DNA of 63,525 nt, filler included, from Intoshia linei (lineage: Eukaryota; Animalia; Orthonectida): NCBI GenBank assembly GCA_001642005.1. It is 6 parts of 6 records of this genome, joined end to end, with 100 filler letters (N's around TTAATTAATTAA, not from the genome) between each part and the next. Parts side by side here need not be neighbours in the genome. Positions count along the whole stretch, not along the records: positions 38,513 to 48,625 come from LWCA01001306.1; 5 more parts are not named here. The stretch is one strand, 5' to 3'. Within the stretch, counting starts at the first letter, position 1, and every line of letters starts with the position of its first letter. The notes beneath the pieces were generated by a model. The model was not told the origin of the DNA, did not search any database, and saw nothing but the letters and a program-made list of their open reading frames with translations. A program made the position numbers and the translations under genes. Shown here piece after piece: positions 38,513 through 48,726 of the stretch.

Positions 38513-41500
38513 TGTAATGAGAAAGATTATTATCTATTATAATTTATAATATAAATAAAATTTATTAATTAAAAATTTTAATAAAGCTGATTGTAATTAA
38601 TAATATATAGTAAATTAAATCAAATAAAATAATATTCATATTATTAAAATTAAAATGACTACTTAGGCAAATCAAAAAATTTTTTTTAAAATCAATTACA
38701 GTCAAAATAATTAGTTATTTAAAAATAACAAAAAAATTTAACGGAATTTCACCATTAATATTAACATGTGCATTAGGACAGAGCCCAACATACCATGAAT
38801 TATAAAATCATCCCTAATTGATTTTTTTAAATTAAAATTCATTTATAAAATAAAAAAAAATTGATAAAATTTTTTTAAATTGTATTTCAGACTTACGGAC
38901 AACAGACATATAGTTTTGACCCCGAATCGGGGACAATTATTCAAGGAATATTGTTGTTGTTGTATGGGTCAAATAAATAGAATTATAAAGAAAGAATATC
39001 GAAAAATATTGATAAAACTCATATGTATGCCAAAAAAAATATCAGGGGAGTACATGATTTTTAATTTTTAAAAAAAGTTGCAATTTCTTTCTTACAAATT
39101 AAATATATTACATATATACATGTATTACATATTTCATATATATTTATATTTTAATATTTTTTTATTATATTAATATTTTGAATTTATATTATACTATATA
39201 ATATGTATTATATAATAATGTTATATGTAATATGTAACATAACTTATTACATTTATAATATAAAAAATTTTTAAATTTACATTATTAAGCTGGTAAATTT
39301 GACATATCATGTAAAATACATTAATTACTATTTAACTATTTTACTATACTATTTAAAAAAGTTTCAAATTTTACCTATATTATAATCAGTATTGTACACT
39401 ATAAATATGGTATACTGTTGTGTATGTCAAATACTTATTTTTGTAATTATTATATATCATAGTTTTCATGGGTTGATAATTTTTTTTGAATTTTTTAATC
39501 ATATCTAATTTTGGATATTTTTATGTAAAAAAAAACAGTTAAGTTAGTGTAAGTTAAATCATGATATTTAAGATAATAACATATGTGTATGTAAGACTAG
39601 TGAATCCATTATAATGTGAATAACTACATTTTAATTTATTATAAAATTAAATTTGTAAATAAATCTGCAAAATAATAACTATAATACTAATTAAAATCTA
39701 AAGTAGATACACATTTAACGCGATAAAAATGTTGAATCTACTTTGATAAACATTTCATTATTATACTAAATAAATAATAGATGGTATTAAATTTTTATTT
39801 TAATTAAACATGTATTGATTAAATTTTAATATAATAGATGGTAAATATTTTACATTATAACTAAACAAATAATATTTATACAAATATTTTTAATTTTTAT
39901 ATTTTTAACTATTTTGATATTTATTTATTCAAGATTGTAAAATTTTATTTGCAAATTTTAAATTATTATTAATAATTATCAATTAATAATAATTTATAAT
40001 CTATTAAACAGATAGTATGTTAATAAATATAAATACCAAATTTAACAAAATATATAATATTAAATTAGGACAGAGCAGAACCTATTAAGTTCGAGGCCAT
40101 CCGAAAATAAAAAATAAGTCCATAAAAAAATTTTTAGAGTCGATGGGTGTCAATTGGTCACATAGAACCTAGCTATCCTATAAAACTATTGAATTGACAT
40201 TTTAAATTTAACACAAAAAAAGTAATAATATTAAAAGATGTAAACTGTAAGGTTTTTAAAAGATTTTAACAAATTGTCTTTACTTTTGTAATTTATAATG
40301 GTAGTCAATGAATTCACCGACTCAATGGGAATATGACCAGAGTTCTCTATTGAAAAGCCTCCTAAGGATATAAAGCATTCTATTATCTGTTAGAACATCT
40401 ATTTTTTCATTTTCATTGGATCCCTTTACAAATTACCATAATATAACATTAATTTTTAATGTAAATAATAATTAATTTAATGTAAAATAATGTATTCATA
40501 ATTTATTATAATAAATACATTAATTAACTAATGAACTTGTAAATTAAATAAAATTATGATTTATTTCAAAATATAGACGGTATAACTTGTTTTCAAATTT
40601 AAAATATCAATAATTATTATAATAATAGTCATTAATTATAATTTATATATTATAATTTAAAAAGACTGTAAATGATTAGTTATTAACTATATCTGTCAAA
40701 TGAAAAATTTGTTAAATTATCAAAATTAAAATTTAGTACGTAATACATATTAAATAAATTATCATTATATATCAATTTTTTCTAATTACTTTGAATTTGA
40801 CCACTTTTGTTACAATAATGTTTATATGGTTCACAATAAATGAATGTAAATATGGAGATTAAGTACTATAATGTAAGAGTTTAGATAAACTATTTTATTA
40901 TCAAATTATAAAGTACCTGTGAAATTTATTTAAAATATGTATTCTCATTTTTCACTAATATTTATATGCCACGAAAGATTAAATTTTCCTAATAATACAT
41001 ATATTTATTACATAAATATACAATTCAAATTAATATAAATTTAATTTAGTAAGTAATATTGTAATAATGGGACAAAATATATCAATAAAAGAATTAATAA
41101 TAATATGATAAGAAATTATTAATTTATTAAATTATAATAGATGGTACTTAATGATTAGGAAAAATCGTATTTCTGTTATTACACGTAACTTACGTGACGT
41201 AAGGCAAATTATAACACCAAATAATTTTTATAGACTGTAAATTTATTAATTATTTATATATCCTCCATATGTATATATATGTATATATGTTAATATATAA
41301 ATTATAATCATAATATATTTATTATATGTAAAATAGTAAATGTAATCAATCAAATGATGTAGACGGTAAATATACACGTTTAGATACATAGAATAATGAG
41401 ATAGTTCATTATGTTTTTGTTATTCATTATTTATTACATTTTTACTTTATGAATTAGACGGTATATGCGATTAATAATTATTTAAATTAACATTTAAATA

Positions 41501-44500
41501 ATAATGAAATTTAAGAAAGTAAAATTATTCTTCACATTAAATTTAAAGTTGCATATAATCAATTTCATACCATATAATAAATATCAGCTGAGTCAACCTC
41601 AAATCCATGATCGATCTTAAAATTTAATTTACATTATAATATATAACATAATATACAAAATATATGCATGTATCATAATTTTGAAACTTTTTTTCTAATT
41701 GCAATATATGCTAAGAAAAAAGTAGATTATAGTCCATAATTATACTATTAAAGTAGACATGTATAATATACATATCTAGAAATTAAAAACTAATCGTTTA
41801 ATTGAAATGGCTGATATACATTGTACATTGCATATACAGTGGAAGTAGCTGGTAGTGATCATATTGGGACACAGTAGTTTTAATCATGATATACATCTGA
41901 TCATACTACGCTATTTTTTTAAATGAAGGTACATTTATTTATTTAAAATACTCGATGAAAGTTAAGATATGAAACATTCTTACTCATAAAATTAAATGTT
42001 GGTAAAAATGTGTGTCTGTTGAATCATTTATTGAGATAACTATCACCGTCCCATATATTTTTAATAAAAATTAAAAGTCTCTTTTTCCGATGAAGAAAGT
42101 AATATACATTTAAAACTAAAAATTGGCAGTTTCACGACCAAAACCACAATTTACCCTAGAATTTTAAAAAGCAAAAATTCTATAATATATAAATTCATTA
42201 ACATTTTCTATTAATATAGTATTAATAATATTCTAAAATGTACTAAAATGTAGTAGAGAAATTTTAAAAAATATTAGTTATTTCCAAAAATTTTTTAATC
42301 TCGCAAAGTCACGCCTTCACCGCAGTGGCGGATCTAGGATTTTCATCCAGGGGCGAAATAATTATTAGATGCCCAAACGCATATAATTTATTTAAATTGG
42401 AATTTTGACACTAAGTTTATTAATATATTTCTATTTATAATAATTTATATTTTTTTTCTAGTTTCCATTCTACTAAATTTGTCAATGTTGTAACATTCAA
42501 ATACTGTTGAGTGGTTCAACTGCATCAAAATCGACTTTTTGGGCAAGTTTTCGCAAATGTACGTTAAGTCCGATAATCTAACTTAAACTGATATTACTAG
42601 CATAAAAAATAATACATAAAGTAATGATGAATGATCATTATACATAAAACGTAAACGATGGTCCTAGAATTTTTTTTTAATTTTTCGCAATTTTAATATA
42701 CAAATTAAATAAAATATTTTAGGGCACATTTGTCACGCCAGGGGGCGGCTTTTTCTATTATCAGTTTTTCTATTGAATCGTTAAATTGAACCGTTTTTTT
42801 TAGATGTGACATTTTATAGTAATTTATACTTAACTAAATTAGTTAATATATAAATATATTGAATATTTTAAATTTTTTCATTTTCTACTTTCAAAATTTA
42901 CTTTAGTACAAGTAAATTTAAATTAAATGTTTTAAACATGGACAAAAACAATTTAAAATTATTTAAAATATTCGGCGGCCACAAAAAATTTAAAAAGAGC
43001 TACAAAATGGCCTGCGGGCCACAGGTTGAGAATTACTGCTATAAGCGAATCTAATTTCATAAATTTTAATTATAAATAAATTTGTATAAGCGACTTCTAC
43101 TGAAAGTTAGTAACTATATTGTGATAATATCTTTTAGAAAGTAAAAATTGTCATTAATAATATTACGCAGTAAAAAATTTGTCTACGATACCTATTGTAA
43201 GGAATTTCTTTACAAAAAAGTTTAGTTTGTCAAAGACTTTTCAAAGACTTTTCAAAAATTTTTCAAATATTTGGATTCTGCGGTCTATAACAAAAATTTA
43301 TGAATAATATATATAATAAATGATTTTATTGATTATTATATTGATAACAGCTAGTAACTTTTCATTTATATTTAAAAACGAGGTGGGGAAAGTGCGAATT
43401 TATTCACCATTCGGGGTCGTCTTATGAACAATTTTAAATAATTTTGCAATTTAGAAAAAAATATATAACATTTATATAAAATAAATTTAATTAATATAAA
43501 CAAAAAATATTGCGTTTTATGCGATTTAGTCATTAATTATTGTATCAATAAATAGTATAATAATTTAATAAAAATAGTTTTATGTATAATTAATAATTAT
43601 AAACTAAAAAAAGTTCAAAGATATTATGATATTGCAATTTATTTAACTAAAAAGCTTACTTAACTACTACATTATTAAAATAATCCTACCATTTTGATGT
43701 ACATGTATCTAAAAATTTAAAAAAAAAAAAAAGAAGCCGACGAGTTAAACAAGGTTTGACTCTACTTAAATTTGCATATAACAAAAATTTTATTTTTTTG
43801 TCATAATCTATTTCATTTTATTTTCAATCGCCTTATTAAATTATATAAGCTTGGCTGAGCGGTATTTCCACACTGATCGCTTCCCCACCCTGATTTAAAT
43901 ATAAAAAATTTATCTAGAAATGTAATACTTGACTATTTTGTAAATACAACAATGATTAGTGAGTAAATATATTTTTAATAATAAATATTGCAATGATCAG
44001 GTCTGTGTGTGAAATACTGGTACCGGTAATTATTAAATTTGTCAGTTTTTTCCATGCATAAAAAATTACAGAAAGAATGTAATTTCTAAAATTGACATTA
44101 TAAAATATTTCGTACTACATCAAAAATTTATATTAAATTTTTATAATTCATTATAATTAATACACATAATACATAATTTAACAACATAAAAATATTTTTT
44201 TTTTATTTCTGAGTTTATAATTTATTTTTATGAAATTTATTTCGTTATGAAACATATTGGAAATAATATTCTGCATCAACATATATTATATATTTAACTG
44301 TAAAAATGACTTTAGTACTGGTACTACGGTAGTAGTCCCTTCCGATTAAATAAATGTATATTATCTTAAAATTATAACTGTAGAGGGTATTCTAATTTAT
44401 AGTATAAAATGAAAAACATTTTATGATAGTGATATTATTGTATTAATAAATGTAACATGCCATTTATGCAGTCGGTAATTATTGATGATATTAATTAGTA

Positions 44501-47500
44501 CAGTCATAATTGAGTTAAAAAATAATTCAAAGTATATTAAAAAAGTATATTTAAATAACCGTACAATTTGTACATTTCAATATCAATAGTTGGTAAAATT
44601 TATATTAATTATCATGTACCTAATATATTATACAACTAATTATCGTAAAATCAATTTAATTTAAATATTAGATGGTTTATTTGATTATATTTTTAATTAT
44701 CATTTTATAATTAACTAATCAATAATTATACTATTTTTAAAGTTTTATAAAGCAAAACACAATAATACATTTTATAAGGGGCCACGAATAATATAAAATA
44801 GCTAAAGGGCAATGGAGAGTAAAATGTTGAGAACCACTGATCTAGTTCGCCATATTTTATATTCCTGTTAATATAATTTTATACTTGTGTAAAAACTAAT
44901 TATTAAATTTAATTGACGTATAGATTGTAAATCGTTATTTATTATCATATAATAGTAAATACTGAGTCTATAATAGGGGCCCGCTTAATAATTTTTAATT
45001 TGTTTATTTTTATGAAACTCTACAAAAGAAAAAATGGAATATACGGATATGACTATTACAGAATAATAGTTTGGACAATGATTTGATCCAATTCTTAAAT
45101 TTTTATATGAATTTATAGTTTCATTTATATTTAAATTTAATTTTTATGTTTTATTTAACCCACTTGTAATATGACTAATAATGAATAAAATAGACTTTAT
45201 AATTGAATTTAATATGATTAATTACAGATTGTAATTATTTAGAATTTATAAAATGTGTATAAAGGGTTTGCAATCGGTTTTTATATACAGTCACTTATTA
45301 ATTATGAACATGGTTCATTGAACACGAATCATGAAAAAATAATGAAATTATTTTGATACAATTGTTGAATTGTTAGTTTTTAATAATACATGTAATTAAA
45401 AATCATTTAATTTCATTTAATAGATTTCATTATTTTATTTTGATCTAAGAATGATTTTTATACATTCTCTACTTACCATACTATGCGAAAGCAATATCTG
45501 CGAGTTCTGATGATAAACCTAGACTAAATTACAAAATATTATTAATACATATATGTTAATTAAATGAAAAAAACTAAAATTAATTGCAAACGCTGTTATT
45601 ATGTTATGACAATAATATATAAATACTGAATAATGTTTCTACACAAATAATTATTCACTTTGCTGCTGGATAACCAATTAATCATGCATTTATTGTAACT
45701 ACAATACATTTATATTATATTTACTGAATGGTTTTACTTTCAAATAAATTAATTTAGTGAGTAAAATTTTTCTTTTTACATAATGCACTATATAATAATA
45801 TATAAAGAATTATAGTTATACTACTATTATACTACTACTACTGTAAAATAACAATTTTTAATATGTAATGTAGATTGTAATATTCATAAAGTTTAATATA
45901 CATAGTATTTAAATATTTTAATTTGAATATATTAGCTAAATGTAATATTCTATTAATAAAATATATATTAACATGTGTTATTATTTAAGTTCTTATTTAT
46001 CTATAAGTATTTAATATTAAAATGATAAATATTAAATTAATCAAATTAATTTAATTTTGTAAATGTGATCCATATTGTTTAACATGTAAGATAAAACGAA
46101 TAAATTTTGATAATTTTTAACGTTTTAATTTTATTTGAAAATATTTTTTCATTTTTGAACAAACAATTAATTGATTTTATTTTCAATAATTTTTATCAAT
46201 TAATTTTAATCCCTGTGTACAGCAGACAATACAAAATTTTTAATTAGTTAATTTAAATTGACCCAAAATACAGTTCTACTGTAGCGTTTACTAGAGATAA
46301 TTAGTACGTTTCTGAGGTAGAGTAGCCATTGGTGGTAAGTAACAATTTTAATTTTTAATTGGTTTACATATCGTTTGTCGATCATTATTAATAATAATTA
46401 TTTTTATTAAACTATATAGAATATATTATATATCAATACATTAATTAATAATATTTGTTACAGATAATCAAAATGAAGGTATTATCCTTACTTGTATAAT
46501 ATGCTACGCAATATTTGTTTGTGTGTGTGTGTGTTATCGTTTATTTCAATAACTACCAGTCTTAGAATTTTATAAAGGTCAGATTTCAATTACAGATTTT
46601 TCCGGGACTGTTAGCAAAATAAATTTCAACCTTTCAAACTCACATCTTACGGATCAAAAAGCCCAATTTTTTTTTTTGAAATGGATATGAAATATGGGTG
46701 AAAATCTATATAATTCATTATTCGGAATTTTTTTCATTACTACGCAATTTTTTAATCTTAAATTCTCATTTTCAAAACATTTAAAACATTAAAATTTAAA
46801 TAAGAAACTACAACAACTTTGTTAATATCATATTTATATTACAATCCTTTGCAATATTGGTAAAATTCGAGTGAAATGTTTATAAATTGAAAATTCAGTT
46901 AATTATTGATACATAATTGTTATTTTTAAGTATTTATTAAATTGGTACTGAATTAACAATAGTTTGTCTAAAAAATTATCACATTGAAAATTAAAAAATA
47001 AGTTTTTATAATTGTATTTTATCTGGAATTTATGCTATTTATTATAATTTTTAGGAAATGACTGTTTTAATTTTATTTTTAATATTATACACACATTCTG
47101 TCTAATAAATTAAAAAATGATATAAAAATTGTTATTAAAATGAAATTTAAAAAAAATTGAATTAAAAGGGTGTGATAAGTATTATTTTCTTGTCTGACGA
47201 GTATCTGATATTGATTATGCTATGTATTAAAAAATTAGAATTATAACCTGGGAATATTAATGAACTTACAAATGATAAAATAACATTTCATAAGATTAAA
47301 TGATCTGGAAGTAGTAAAATTTATTATTTTATAGTGTACCCTATCCAACAGTGAACATGATAATTTTTGACACTTTATTGATACATATATTTATTGTATA
47401 TTCAGGATAACTGAAAGTATTTTTAATACAATCACACATCTACATTTATTAAAATGTAAAATTTAATATATAATTAATGACTTTCAAATTGATTGATTAT

Positions 47501-48476
47501 ATTGTAGATAAACCGGGTATTTATATATATTCAACAAATATGCCAATGAAAACGTGTCCATATCTATGAAAATTATATTAATTTAGATGATTATGGTAAA
47601 AGTCTTAATGCATGTTTATCTCTGTTTCATTAAATAATAAAAGTTAAATTTTAGATGACTTTATTGGTATTTTTTTAGTTTATGTACACTTTTTTAATTA
47701 TAGTATATTTTTATAATAAAATTACATATTAGATTGTAATAATTTATGATAACTATTATTAAATTTTTCTACATTTGATGATTGATGATTGTACTATAAT
47801 ACAATTACATAAATTTCAGTGGGTTAATTTTTATAAATATAAATAATTATATTGGAATAGTTCATAAAAAGAAATAGAAACCCGTTGTGTGTAAAATTTA
47901 TAAAATAACTAAGATAATTTATATTACATATGACGGGTGTATACATTATTCTTGCTATTTATCTTGTTAATACATTATCGCAGAAAGTAATTAAATAAGA
48001 TACAATTAATAAATGTTTAATAACGTACAATAAGTCGAATAAATGTATTATTATTTTAGAAAGTAACGAAAATATAATGAAAAAATTATCAATGAAATAC
48101 ATGTATTTTAATATTATACTTAGAGGGTATGATTGTAATTTGCAATAATAATATAAAACGTGATAATATAATTAATATGAATATGTATATTTTATTTTAA
48201 AGAAAGTAATTATCAAATACAACGTATAATAAATTATTATATACCAATTAAACATATTAATACATTTTAATAGTTGGTAAATTATCTTAATTACTAGAAA
48301 ACATGTTTACTTTATATCTATCAACAAATCGCCATTTTTTTATGTAATCGTCAAACATTAATCATTTATATTGGGTTATCCGTTCAAAAAATGTATTTTA
48401 TACATCGCTGGACACGTTTATTATACCCATTATCGTCTACAATACAAAGGTATAATATAAATGTATTTTTTAGTTA
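38513..48476 (+). CDS. Predicted micro-exon gene, block 1: 39 phase-1 exons (33 of 3 nt, 2 of 6, 2 of 9, 1 of 12, 1 of 15); partial at both ends
   Basis: Exon starts and sequences, each flanked by AG and GT: 38587 CTGATT, 39290 CTG, 39781 ATG, 39838 ATG, 39934 ATT, 40012 ATA, 40577 ACG, 40665 ACT, 40737 TAC, 41050 TAA, 41141 ATG, 41234 ACT, 41363 ACG, 41458 ACG, 41516 AAA, 43138 AAA, 43351 CTA, 43960 TGA, 44384 AGG, 44472 TCG, 44590 TTG, 44672 ATG, 44924 ATT, 45228 ATT, 45758 TGA, 45874 ATT, 45936 CTAAAT, 46464 ATAATCAAAATGAAG, 47508 ATAAACCGG, 47587 ATGATTATG, 47655 ATGACTTTATTG, 47733 ATT, 47820 TGG, 47984 AAA, 48060 AAA, 48124 AGG, 48203 AAA, 48274 TTG, 48474 TTA. With the T|GTAATG at 38513 they translate to SDSDDDYNDLLNDYDEKTMKVVDDYLNSKYNQNEDKPDDYDDFIDLEKKEIV. 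Confidence 0.8.
46484..47075 (+). mobile_element. Interspersed Helitron-like repeat (other copies about 61247-62090, and inverted/deleted about 13140-13565 in an NDUFAF3 intron)
   Basis: Begins A|TCCTTACTTGTATAATATGCTACGCAATATTTGTTTGTGTGTG, a TC 5' end followed by a TG microsatellite as in non-autonomous Helitrons. Clear similarity among three loci; no 3' CTAG/hairpin identified. Confidence 0.55.
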
Positions 48477-48726
48477 GTAATGCCAATTTTTATAATATTT
48501 TTGAATCATAGTAAACTTTTAATTATGTATTATATATTTACCAGTGACGTAGCGTCATAGTGTGCAAGGTGTCGCCGAACACCCTAGACAATTTAAAATT
48601 TAAAAAAATTATATTTAATAAATAANNNNNNNNNNNNNNNNNNNNNNNNNNNNNNNNNNNNNNNNNNNNTTAATTAATTAANNNNNNNNNNNNNNNNNNN
48701 NNNNNNNNNNNNNNNNNNNNNNNNNA

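Follow-up and report, generated by a model that had tools for sequence, protein, structure and literature searches.

The window considered here comprises 63,525 nucleotides (nt, filler included) of assembled DNA from the orthonectid Intoshia linei, and the piece analysed within it is the contig LWCA01001306.1 (positions 38513–48625; 10113 nt). This contig consists of AT-rich sequence (20% GC), with A about as frequent as T and a weak GC skew. It contains no open reading frame (ORF) longer than 63 amino acids (aa) and none that is gene-like, as the earlier note on this DNA had stated, and scans of the piece with Rfam and for tRNAs give no match. What it does contain, on the plus strand, is an array of sites in which an acceptor-like AG and a donor-like GT are separated by exactly three bases, i.e. 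candidate exons of 3 nt, the size of a single codon. All conclusions are drawn from genomic sequence alone.

The three-base array is real and far exceeds chance. The pattern AG-NNN-GT occurs 44 times on the plus strand, compared with 12.9±3.5 (maximum 25) in the null model, which consisted of 200 dinucleotide-preserving shuffles, and with 6 occurrences on the minus strand of the piece, which served as a second control. With the donor extended by one base (AG-NNN-GTA, hereafter strict sites, as opposed to the looser set of 44), there are 35 occurrences against 5.2 expected and one on the minus strand, so that about 5 of the 35 strict sites can be attributed to chance. For TAG-NNN-GTA, the count is 22, compared with 2.0±1.4 in the shuffles (maximum 7) and none on the minus strand; the earlier note had listed 21 such sites against a rough expectation of 2–3 per 10 kb, and every site that it quoted is found where it was placed. 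The Poisson tail probabilities for these counts range from 1e-11 to 7e-18, and hence the enrichment outlives the look-elsewhere effect of even a very large scan. When all 1920 combinations of two dinucleotides separated by a gap of 1–8 bases are ranked without a prior choice of pattern, AG-N3-GT comes first (z 8.5), and the runners-up (GA-N2-GT, AG-N2-GG and AG-N4-TA) are parts of the same motif.

The enrichment is confined to one spacing. The earlier note had proposed counting AG-N(k)-GT against shuffled sequence and the opposite strand, and this count peaks on the plus strand at k=3 (44 versus 12.9, and 6 on the minus strand). For k=1, 2, 4–8, 10, 11, 13 and 14, the plus-strand counts lie at background (8–14, with about 13 expected); that note had called spacings of 2, 4 or 5 nt occasional. 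Directly abutting AG-GT (k=0) is not enriched and, if anything, is depleted (11 versus 19.0±4.4 expected). When uniform strict criteria are imposed on both strands (YAG-N(k)-GTA preceded by an AG-free zone, k=0–30), k=3 yields 26 sites on the plus strand and none on the minus strand, and every other k yields 5 or fewer.

The flanks of the sites resemble those of splice sites, also in features that played no part in how the earlier note chose them. The donor side reads GTAA in 61% of the sites, compared with 16% of the other GT dinucleotides, T occupies position −3 of the acceptor in 61–63% versus 37%, and a branch-point-like YTRAY is present in 63% versus 41% (P 0.018). Within the triplets, A is found at the first position in 25 of the 44 sites, and G or T at the third, so that the overall motif is approximately TAG-A-Y-K-GTAA, with the three central bases varying widely (ATG, ACG, ATT, ACT, AAA, TGA, TAA, TTG, AGG, TCG, CTG and others). 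The 25 nt upstream of the sites contain 7 AG, compared with 20.7 expected from local composition; for the inverted dinucleotide GA, the numbers are 21 and 20.7. Part of this scarcity is owed to the local paucity of G and to a general AG/CT deficit of the piece, because of which naive tests of AG exclusion look too strong. AG and CT are under-represented relative to local composition even off-site, with, for example, 13 versus 25 and 16 versus 25, respectively, over the 25 nt that follow the donors. Under stratification by G content, the 20 nt upstream are free of AG at 31 of the 35 strict sites, compared with 24.0±2.3 expected (z 3.1).

The spacing of the sites is intron-like and provides the cleanest of these signals. 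Only 1 of the 34 gaps between strict sites is shorter than 55 nt, whereas 5.8 are expected (P 0.008), and 18 of the 34 fall within 55–130 nt, compared with 6.6 expected (P<2e-4). Thus, the distances have a floor at about 54–57 nt and pile up between 55 and 130 nt but are variable rather than periodic. The chain of exons proposed in the earlier note, when rebuilt, includes 38 introns with a minimum of 54 nt and a median of 92.5 nt, 23 of which are 54–130 nt long; the short introns are 9–20% GC, and the long ones carry GC-richer inserts. The candidate exons (Table 1) begin 74 nt into the piece and stop 150 nt short of its end, and because they come close to both contig edges, the ends of the gene would fall outside the contig, i.e. 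the gene probably runs off the piece on both sides. Besides the AAT at 44076, the sites at 41849 and 43107 are flagged as probable chance occurrences.

Table 1. Candidate exons in the piece, with flanking bases and the length of the modelled upstream intron where given.
Positions	Strand	Class	Acceptor side	Exon	Donor side	Upstream intron (nt)	Remark
38587..38592	+	candidate 6-nt exon	ataaag	CTGATT	gtaatt		first of the chain; k=6 not enriched, weak support
39290..39292	+	3-nt, strict	attaag	CTG	gtaaat		AG-free upstream
39781..39783	+	3-nt, strict	taatag	ATG	gtatta		
39838..39840	+	3-nt, strict	taatag	ATG	gtaaat	54	
39934..39936	+	3-nt, strict	ttcaag	ATT	gtaaaa	93	
40012..40014	+	3-nt, strict	aaacag	ATA	gtatgt	75	overlapping alternative at 40016
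40577..40579	+	3-nt, strict	atatag	ACG	gtataa		
40665..40667	+	3-nt, strict	aaaaag	ACT	gtaaat	85	
40737..40739	+	3-nt, strict	atttag	TAC	gtaata	69	
41050..41052	+	3-nt, strict	atttag	TAA	gtaata		excludes phase 0 if coding
41141..41143	+	3-nt, strict	taatag	ATG	gtactt	88	
41234..41236	+	3-nt, strict	ttatag	ACT	gtaaat	90	
41363..41365	+	3-nt, strict	atgtag	ACG	gtaaat	126	
41458..41460	+	3-nt, strict	aattag	ACG	gtatat	92	
41516..41518	+	3-nt, strict	tttaag	AAA	gtaaaa	55	
42096..42098	+	3-nt, lower confidence	atgaag	AAA	gtaata		AG within 20 nt upstream
43138..43140	+	3-nt, strict	cttttag	AAA	gtaaaa		31 nt past doubtful site 43107
43351..43353	+	3-nt, strict	taacag	CTA	gtaact		
43960..43962	+	3-nt, strict	gattag	TGA	gtaaat		excludes phase 0 if coding
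44076..44078	+	probable chance site	acagaaag	AAT	gtaatt		outside the model; AG 4 nt upstream
44384..44386	+	3-nt, strict	ctgtag	AGG	gtattc		
44472..44474	+	3-nt, strict	atgcag	TCG	gtaatt	85	
44590..44592	+	3-nt, strict	caatag	TTG	gtaaaa	115	
44672..44674	+	3-nt, lower confidence	tattag	ATG	gtttat	79	GTT donor
44924..44926	+	3-nt, strict	gtatag	ATT	gtaaat		
45228..45230	+	3-nt, strict	ttacag	ATT	gtaatt		
45758..45760	+	3-nt, strict	atttag	TGA	gtaaaa		
45874..45876	+	3-nt, strict	atgtag	ATT	gtaata	113	
45936..45941	+	candidate 6-nt exon	tattag	CTAAAT	gtaata		59 nt past previous exon; statistically inseparable from background
46464..46478	+	candidate 15-nt exon	ttacag	15 nt	gtatta		statistically inseparable from background
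47508..47516	+	candidate 9-nt exon	ttgtag	ATAAACCGG	gtattt		opens run spaced 70, 59, 66 nt
47587..47595	+	candidate 9-nt exon	atttag	ATGATTATG	gtaaaa	70	
47655..47666	+	candidate 12-nt exon	ttttag	12 nt	gtattt	59	AG within 20 nt upstream
47733..47735	+	3-nt, strict	tattag	ATT	gtaata	66	
47820..47822	+	3-nt, lower confidence	tttcag	TGG	gttaat	84	GTT donor
47984..47986	+	3-nt, strict	tcgcag	AAA	gtaatt		
48060..48062	+	3-nt, strict	ttttag	AAA	gtaacg	73	
48124..48126	+	3-nt, strict	acttag	AGG	gtatga	61	
48203..48205	+	3-nt, strict	ttaaag	AAA	gtaatt	76	
48274..48276	+	3-nt, strict	taatag	TTG	gtaaat	68	
48474..48476	+	3-nt, strict	ttttag	TTA	gtaatg		last before contig end

If the triplets are coding, their content constrains the reading frame. 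Phase 0 is excluded because triplets TAA and TGA occupy excellent sites (41050, 43960 and 45758), and the third frame accumulates 8–16 stops, which leaves phase 1 as the sole possible coding phase. For the 39-exon, 156-nt chain of the earlier note, the rebuilt phase-1 frame is indeed free of stops, compared with 3 and 16 stops in the other frames. Among adjacent strict sites, a phase-1 stop is forced by the AAT at 44076 alone, and this site is independently suspect because of the AG located 4 nt upstream; the second phase-1 stop of the strict set appears only when the chain skips the non-strict exons that lie from 45874 to 47984. The conceptual phase-1 peptide of this part contains no cysteine.

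The reading that we favour, with a probability somewhat above even, is that the piece represents the interior of a plus-strand, protein-coding micro-exon gene, cut at both contig ends, that would comprise about 30 exons of 3 nt and perhaps a few additional exons of 6–15 nt. The stronger form of this proposal, in which these approximately 30 single-triplet exons are consecutive and separated by phase-1 introns, such that almost every codon is assembled across an intron, we place barely on the favourable side of even. The central idea of the earlier note, that juxtaposed splice sites on one strand enclose 3-nt exons between short introns, is strongly supported in silico; its coding claim comes out weak, and the 6–15-nt exons that it added are indistinguishable from background.

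Under the proposed model, the introns would be canonical GT-AG introns, mostly short (54–130 nt) and very AT-rich, and we infer that they are recognised by intron definition, so that the length of the exon would be irrelevant to its recognition. Given that U1 at a donor and U2AF at the acceptor 3 nt upstream could not be bound at the same time, the introns would have to be removed one after another, probably co-transcriptionally and in the 5' to 3' direction, and each ligation would expose the next donor. Such a process would resemble recursive splicing, except that every step would leave one triplet behind. With all introns in phase 1, nearly every codon would be split. The best argument that the frame matters is that the gap is exactly one codon and that gaps of 0, 1, 2, 4 and 5 nt do not exceed background.

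Because the splice consensus places A behind the acceptor AG and G or T ahead of the donor GT, it would by itself force the phase-1 codons towards types such as GAT, GAC, TAT, AAT, AAA and GAA, and for this reason, the predicted product would be acidic, rich in Asp, Tyr, Asn, Lys and Glu, and probably disordered. By analogy with the aphid KQY and bicycle genes and the micro-exon genes (MEGs) of schistosomes, it is likely to be a secreted, fast-evolving protein, and skipping of symmetric 3-nt exons could vary such a product one residue at a time.

The proposed gene can be compared with several systems in which very small exons are documented. The earlier note set its find against the MEGs of Schistosoma, a fair comparison as far as novelty is concerned, but missed closer precedents from sap-sucking insects, namely the KQY/KHI ‘miniature exon’ genes (PMC7495047), which are the nearest of all, and the bicycle genes (PMC9168663). 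In the pea aphid, KQY1a spans 45.7 kb and encodes a protein of 204 aa in 37 exons, of which 33 are 15 bp or shorter (Dommel et al. 2020, PMC7495047). For the KQY/KHI ‘cassette effector’ genes, the reported exon minimum is 5–9 bp and the introns range from 180 to over 5000 bp; the KQY genes share a conserved signal-peptide first exon and have proven salivary expression and secretion (PMC7495047). The similarity would lie in a small product that is scattered across a long gene in dozens of tiny, frame-preserving exons and in the lack of a recognisable domain. The differences are that the candidate exons here are 3 nt rather than 5–9 bp long, that most of the introns are 54–130 nt rather than 180 to >5000 bp, and that the counterpart of the KQY signal-peptide exon, like the N-terminus in which a KQY/KHI motif would be sought, would lie outside this piece.

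The bicycle genes of aphids, phylloxerans and scale insects contain 5–25 microexons separated by long introns, with CYC motifs in most of the proteins (PMC9168663; Korgaonkar et al. 2021), although some classifier-defined homologues lack CYC, and more than 100 microexons make up a ‘megacycle’ gene (PMC9168663; 2020 preprint). Nearly all internal exons in these genes start at codon position 2, which corresponds to phase-1 introns (Stern and Han 2022, PMC9168663). The array in I. linei shares with them the many unusually small internal exons, here as predicted in silico; as to phase, no frame other than phase 1 could be open in it, and that frame is no more open than under permuted exon orders. 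The array differs in that the exons are mostly single triplets and in that the conceptual peptide, being devoid of cysteine, has no CYC motifs in this part; furthermore, in both the bicycle and the KQY genes, the introns are long, whereas the modelled introns here have the median and the preponderance of short lengths given above (23 of 38).

The schistosome MEGs, which are restricted to Schistosomatidae, have 10–20 symmetric exons, mostly of 6–81 bp with a mode of 15 bp, separated by introns of 0.1–5 kb, and encode secreted, variable proteins for which exon skipping has been proposed as a source of variants (10.1101/2023.06.21.545858). Runs of symmetric, frame-preserving micro-exons are common to the MEGs and the proposed gene, but the latter would have about 30 exons of 3 nt, with only k=3 enriched, and mostly sub-130-nt introns in an 80% AT context.

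Single 3-nt exons are known as well, namely micro-Ex8 of Drosophila homothorax (hth; PMC7392893), one in human MAP4K5 (PMC8632122) and one in RPS24. These cases show that the spliceosome is able to include an exon of exactly 3 nt; there, the exon is single and lies between normal exons, whereas the candidates here come in series. At the ratchet points (recursive splice sites) of long Drosophila introns, the acceptor AG directly abuts the donor GT, with no bases between them, and nothing is left in the mRNA. As in the proposed gene, acceptor and donor sit side by side, and the regenerated donor can work only once the intron upstream has been removed (an order that, for the array, we infer), but k=0 is not enriched here (11 versus 19.0 expected) and k=3 is. 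Taken at face value, the array would be a micro-exon gene carried to the limit of one codon, given that the known micro-exon genes mostly have exons of at least 6 nt between long introns.

Several observations weigh against the coding micro-exon gene. The stop-free 52-aa frame, which the earlier note presented as evidence, hinges on sites dropped by hand: the unbiased sets (all 44 sites, the 35 strict ones or the 22 TAG-NNN-GTA sites) contain 1–2 stops in phase 1, and permuting the exon order gives about 2. Hence the open frame stems from triplet composition and hand-picking, not from exon order, and is non-significant. Likewise, that the larger exons listed in that note all have lengths divisible by three reflects selection, because only k=3 is enriched under uniform criteria; with k up to 30, the multiples of three other than 3 itself account for 16 sites, versus 19 and 21 in the other two residue classes. 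The exons of 6, 6, 9, 9, 12 and 15 nt therefore have no individual support beyond background and are unproven, although the trio at 47508, 47587 and 47655 earns some credit from its spacing of 70, 59 and 66 nt, which runs into the 3-nt sites. Since a purely coding constraint would permit exons of 6 and 9 nt as well, the exclusivity of 3 wants a further explanation. The piece lacks a first exon, a signal peptide and a terminal exon; no polypyrimidine tract precedes the sites, A and T being about equal there; and the poly(A) signals AATAAA and ATTAAA are neither depleted on the plus strand nor asymmetric between the strands. The literature searched yielded no description of consecutive 3-nt exons. 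The similarity to the effector genes of sap-sucking insects is only a lead, and membership in the KQY/KHI, bicycle or MEG groups is not established.

Some of these observations would be accommodated if the splice sites were real but the array did not code as modelled, being instead an untranslated region or non-coding transcript, a decaying gene, or a set of stepping stones for the piecemeal removal of a very long intron, with few triplets retained per mRNA. The phase-1 frame that is no more open than permuted exon orders, the triplet composition set largely by the splice consensus, the unsupported larger in-frame exons, and the absence from the piece of any ordinary exon, start or stop context all fit this explanation. 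It is nevertheless rather unlikely, because frame-free gaps of 1, 2, 4 or 5 nt (or 0, as at Drosophila ratchet points) should then serve equally well, whereas only k=3 is enriched, and exons of precisely one codon are to be expected where the frame is preserved. A different possibility is that (T)AG-NNN-GTAA is not used in splicing at all but is an oriented binding or processing motif, or else the conserved core of an ancient, degenerate tandem repeat of about 55–130 nt. The motif is indeed somewhat more specific than bare splice sites, the preferred spacing could be a repeat period, and two adjacent ATG units 57 nt apart (39774–39821 and 39831–39878) are 73% identical over 48 nt. However, the combination of invariant AG and GT with variable central bases is the reverse of a typical protein-binding site, the spacing has a sharp floor and lacks a period, and the AG-poor upstream zone is a property of 3' splice sites. 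Moreover, Tandem Repeats Finder (TRF) and a repeat finder detect no array or family covering the sites, only AT low-complexity sequence and short chance pairs that have the motif at their centre. We regard an unspliced motif or relic repeat as decidedly improbable.

That the signal derives from a satellite or from transposon copies was considered separately and rejected: besides the lack of a repeat family, the interiors of the 23 short introns, trimmed of the splice consensus and compared all against all, have a mean local score of 20.15, versus 19.81±0.32 for shuffled sequence, and being no more alike than that, they do not form a family; the motif alone has been kept. The pair of ATG units at 39774–39878 is the sole hint that an exon-plus-intron unit could have spread by tandem duplication; similarity of this kind is undetectable across all the short introns, which lends no support to recent duplication in tandem. 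Finally, the exons in the earlier note were picked by eye, and the general under-representation of AG and CT can mislead simple expectations, so that a chance or compositional artefact of 80% AT sequence, amplified by the choice of sites, has to be weighed. At the level of the piece, this explanation is refuted by the shuffles, whose maxima of 25 and 7 compare with 44 and 22 observed, by the minus strand (6 and 0), by the first rank among the 1920 patterns and by Poisson probabilities of at most 1e-11; what remains for it is a negligible probability.

If the micro-exon gene is real, no coding sequence described so far would be split more finely, with exon size at its practical minimum dozens of times in succession, and it would imply that a long series of 3-nt exons is no obstacle to the spliceosome under intron definition. 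The case bears on how splice sites 3 nt apart could be used without steric clash, and hence on ordered, recursive-like splicing, and on the origin and upkeep of such a gene, in which seemingly unconstrained sequence is interrupted by nothing conspicuous other than the AG and GT signals, all in one orientation. It also bears on coding sequence that goes unnoticed, given that gene finders and RNA sequencing aligners cannot place reads made of 3-nt pieces. Should the product be a secreted effector, triplet skipping would offer combinatorial variation at single-residue resolution, and should other contigs of this genome look alike, they would represent a class of genes invisible to current annotation pipelines.

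The remaining elements of the piece are minor. A GC-richer island (about 24–31% GC) at 40060–40432 has, in two neighbouring frames of the minus strand, stretches of 52 and 36 aa that are free of stops and, by eye, bears some likeness to a decayed transposase fragment; database searches gave nothing usable. For the minus strand of 40234–40432, Pfam and a word-based protein search found nothing, and an exact look-up of one ORF retrieved no record. A full phmmer search gave four weak matches; three of them, when scanned with Pfam, show no transposase or other informative domain, only mismatched fragments in which no stretch is significant on its own.

Two pairs of short GC-rich blocks were also noticed by eye, one (42290–42360 and 48540–48590) with a common CAGTG-R-CG... 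motif and the other (42960–43040 and 44780–44850) with a common GGCCAC...GTTGAGAA..ACTG motif; in appearance, they are remnants of small dispersed elements that inserted into the longer introns. A 21-nt direct repeat at 38772–38792 and 40064–40084 (ATTAGGACAGAGC..., 86% identical), which borders two GC-richer blocks, may be the sign of a single small element present in two copies. Long modelled introns also harbour an 11-nt tandem repeat at 43226–43272 (TCAAAGACTTT, about 3.5–4 copies) and a (TG)9 microsatellite at 46516–46534, and a simple AT-rich tandem repeat is found at 39123–39171 (TRF rows 39098–39233).

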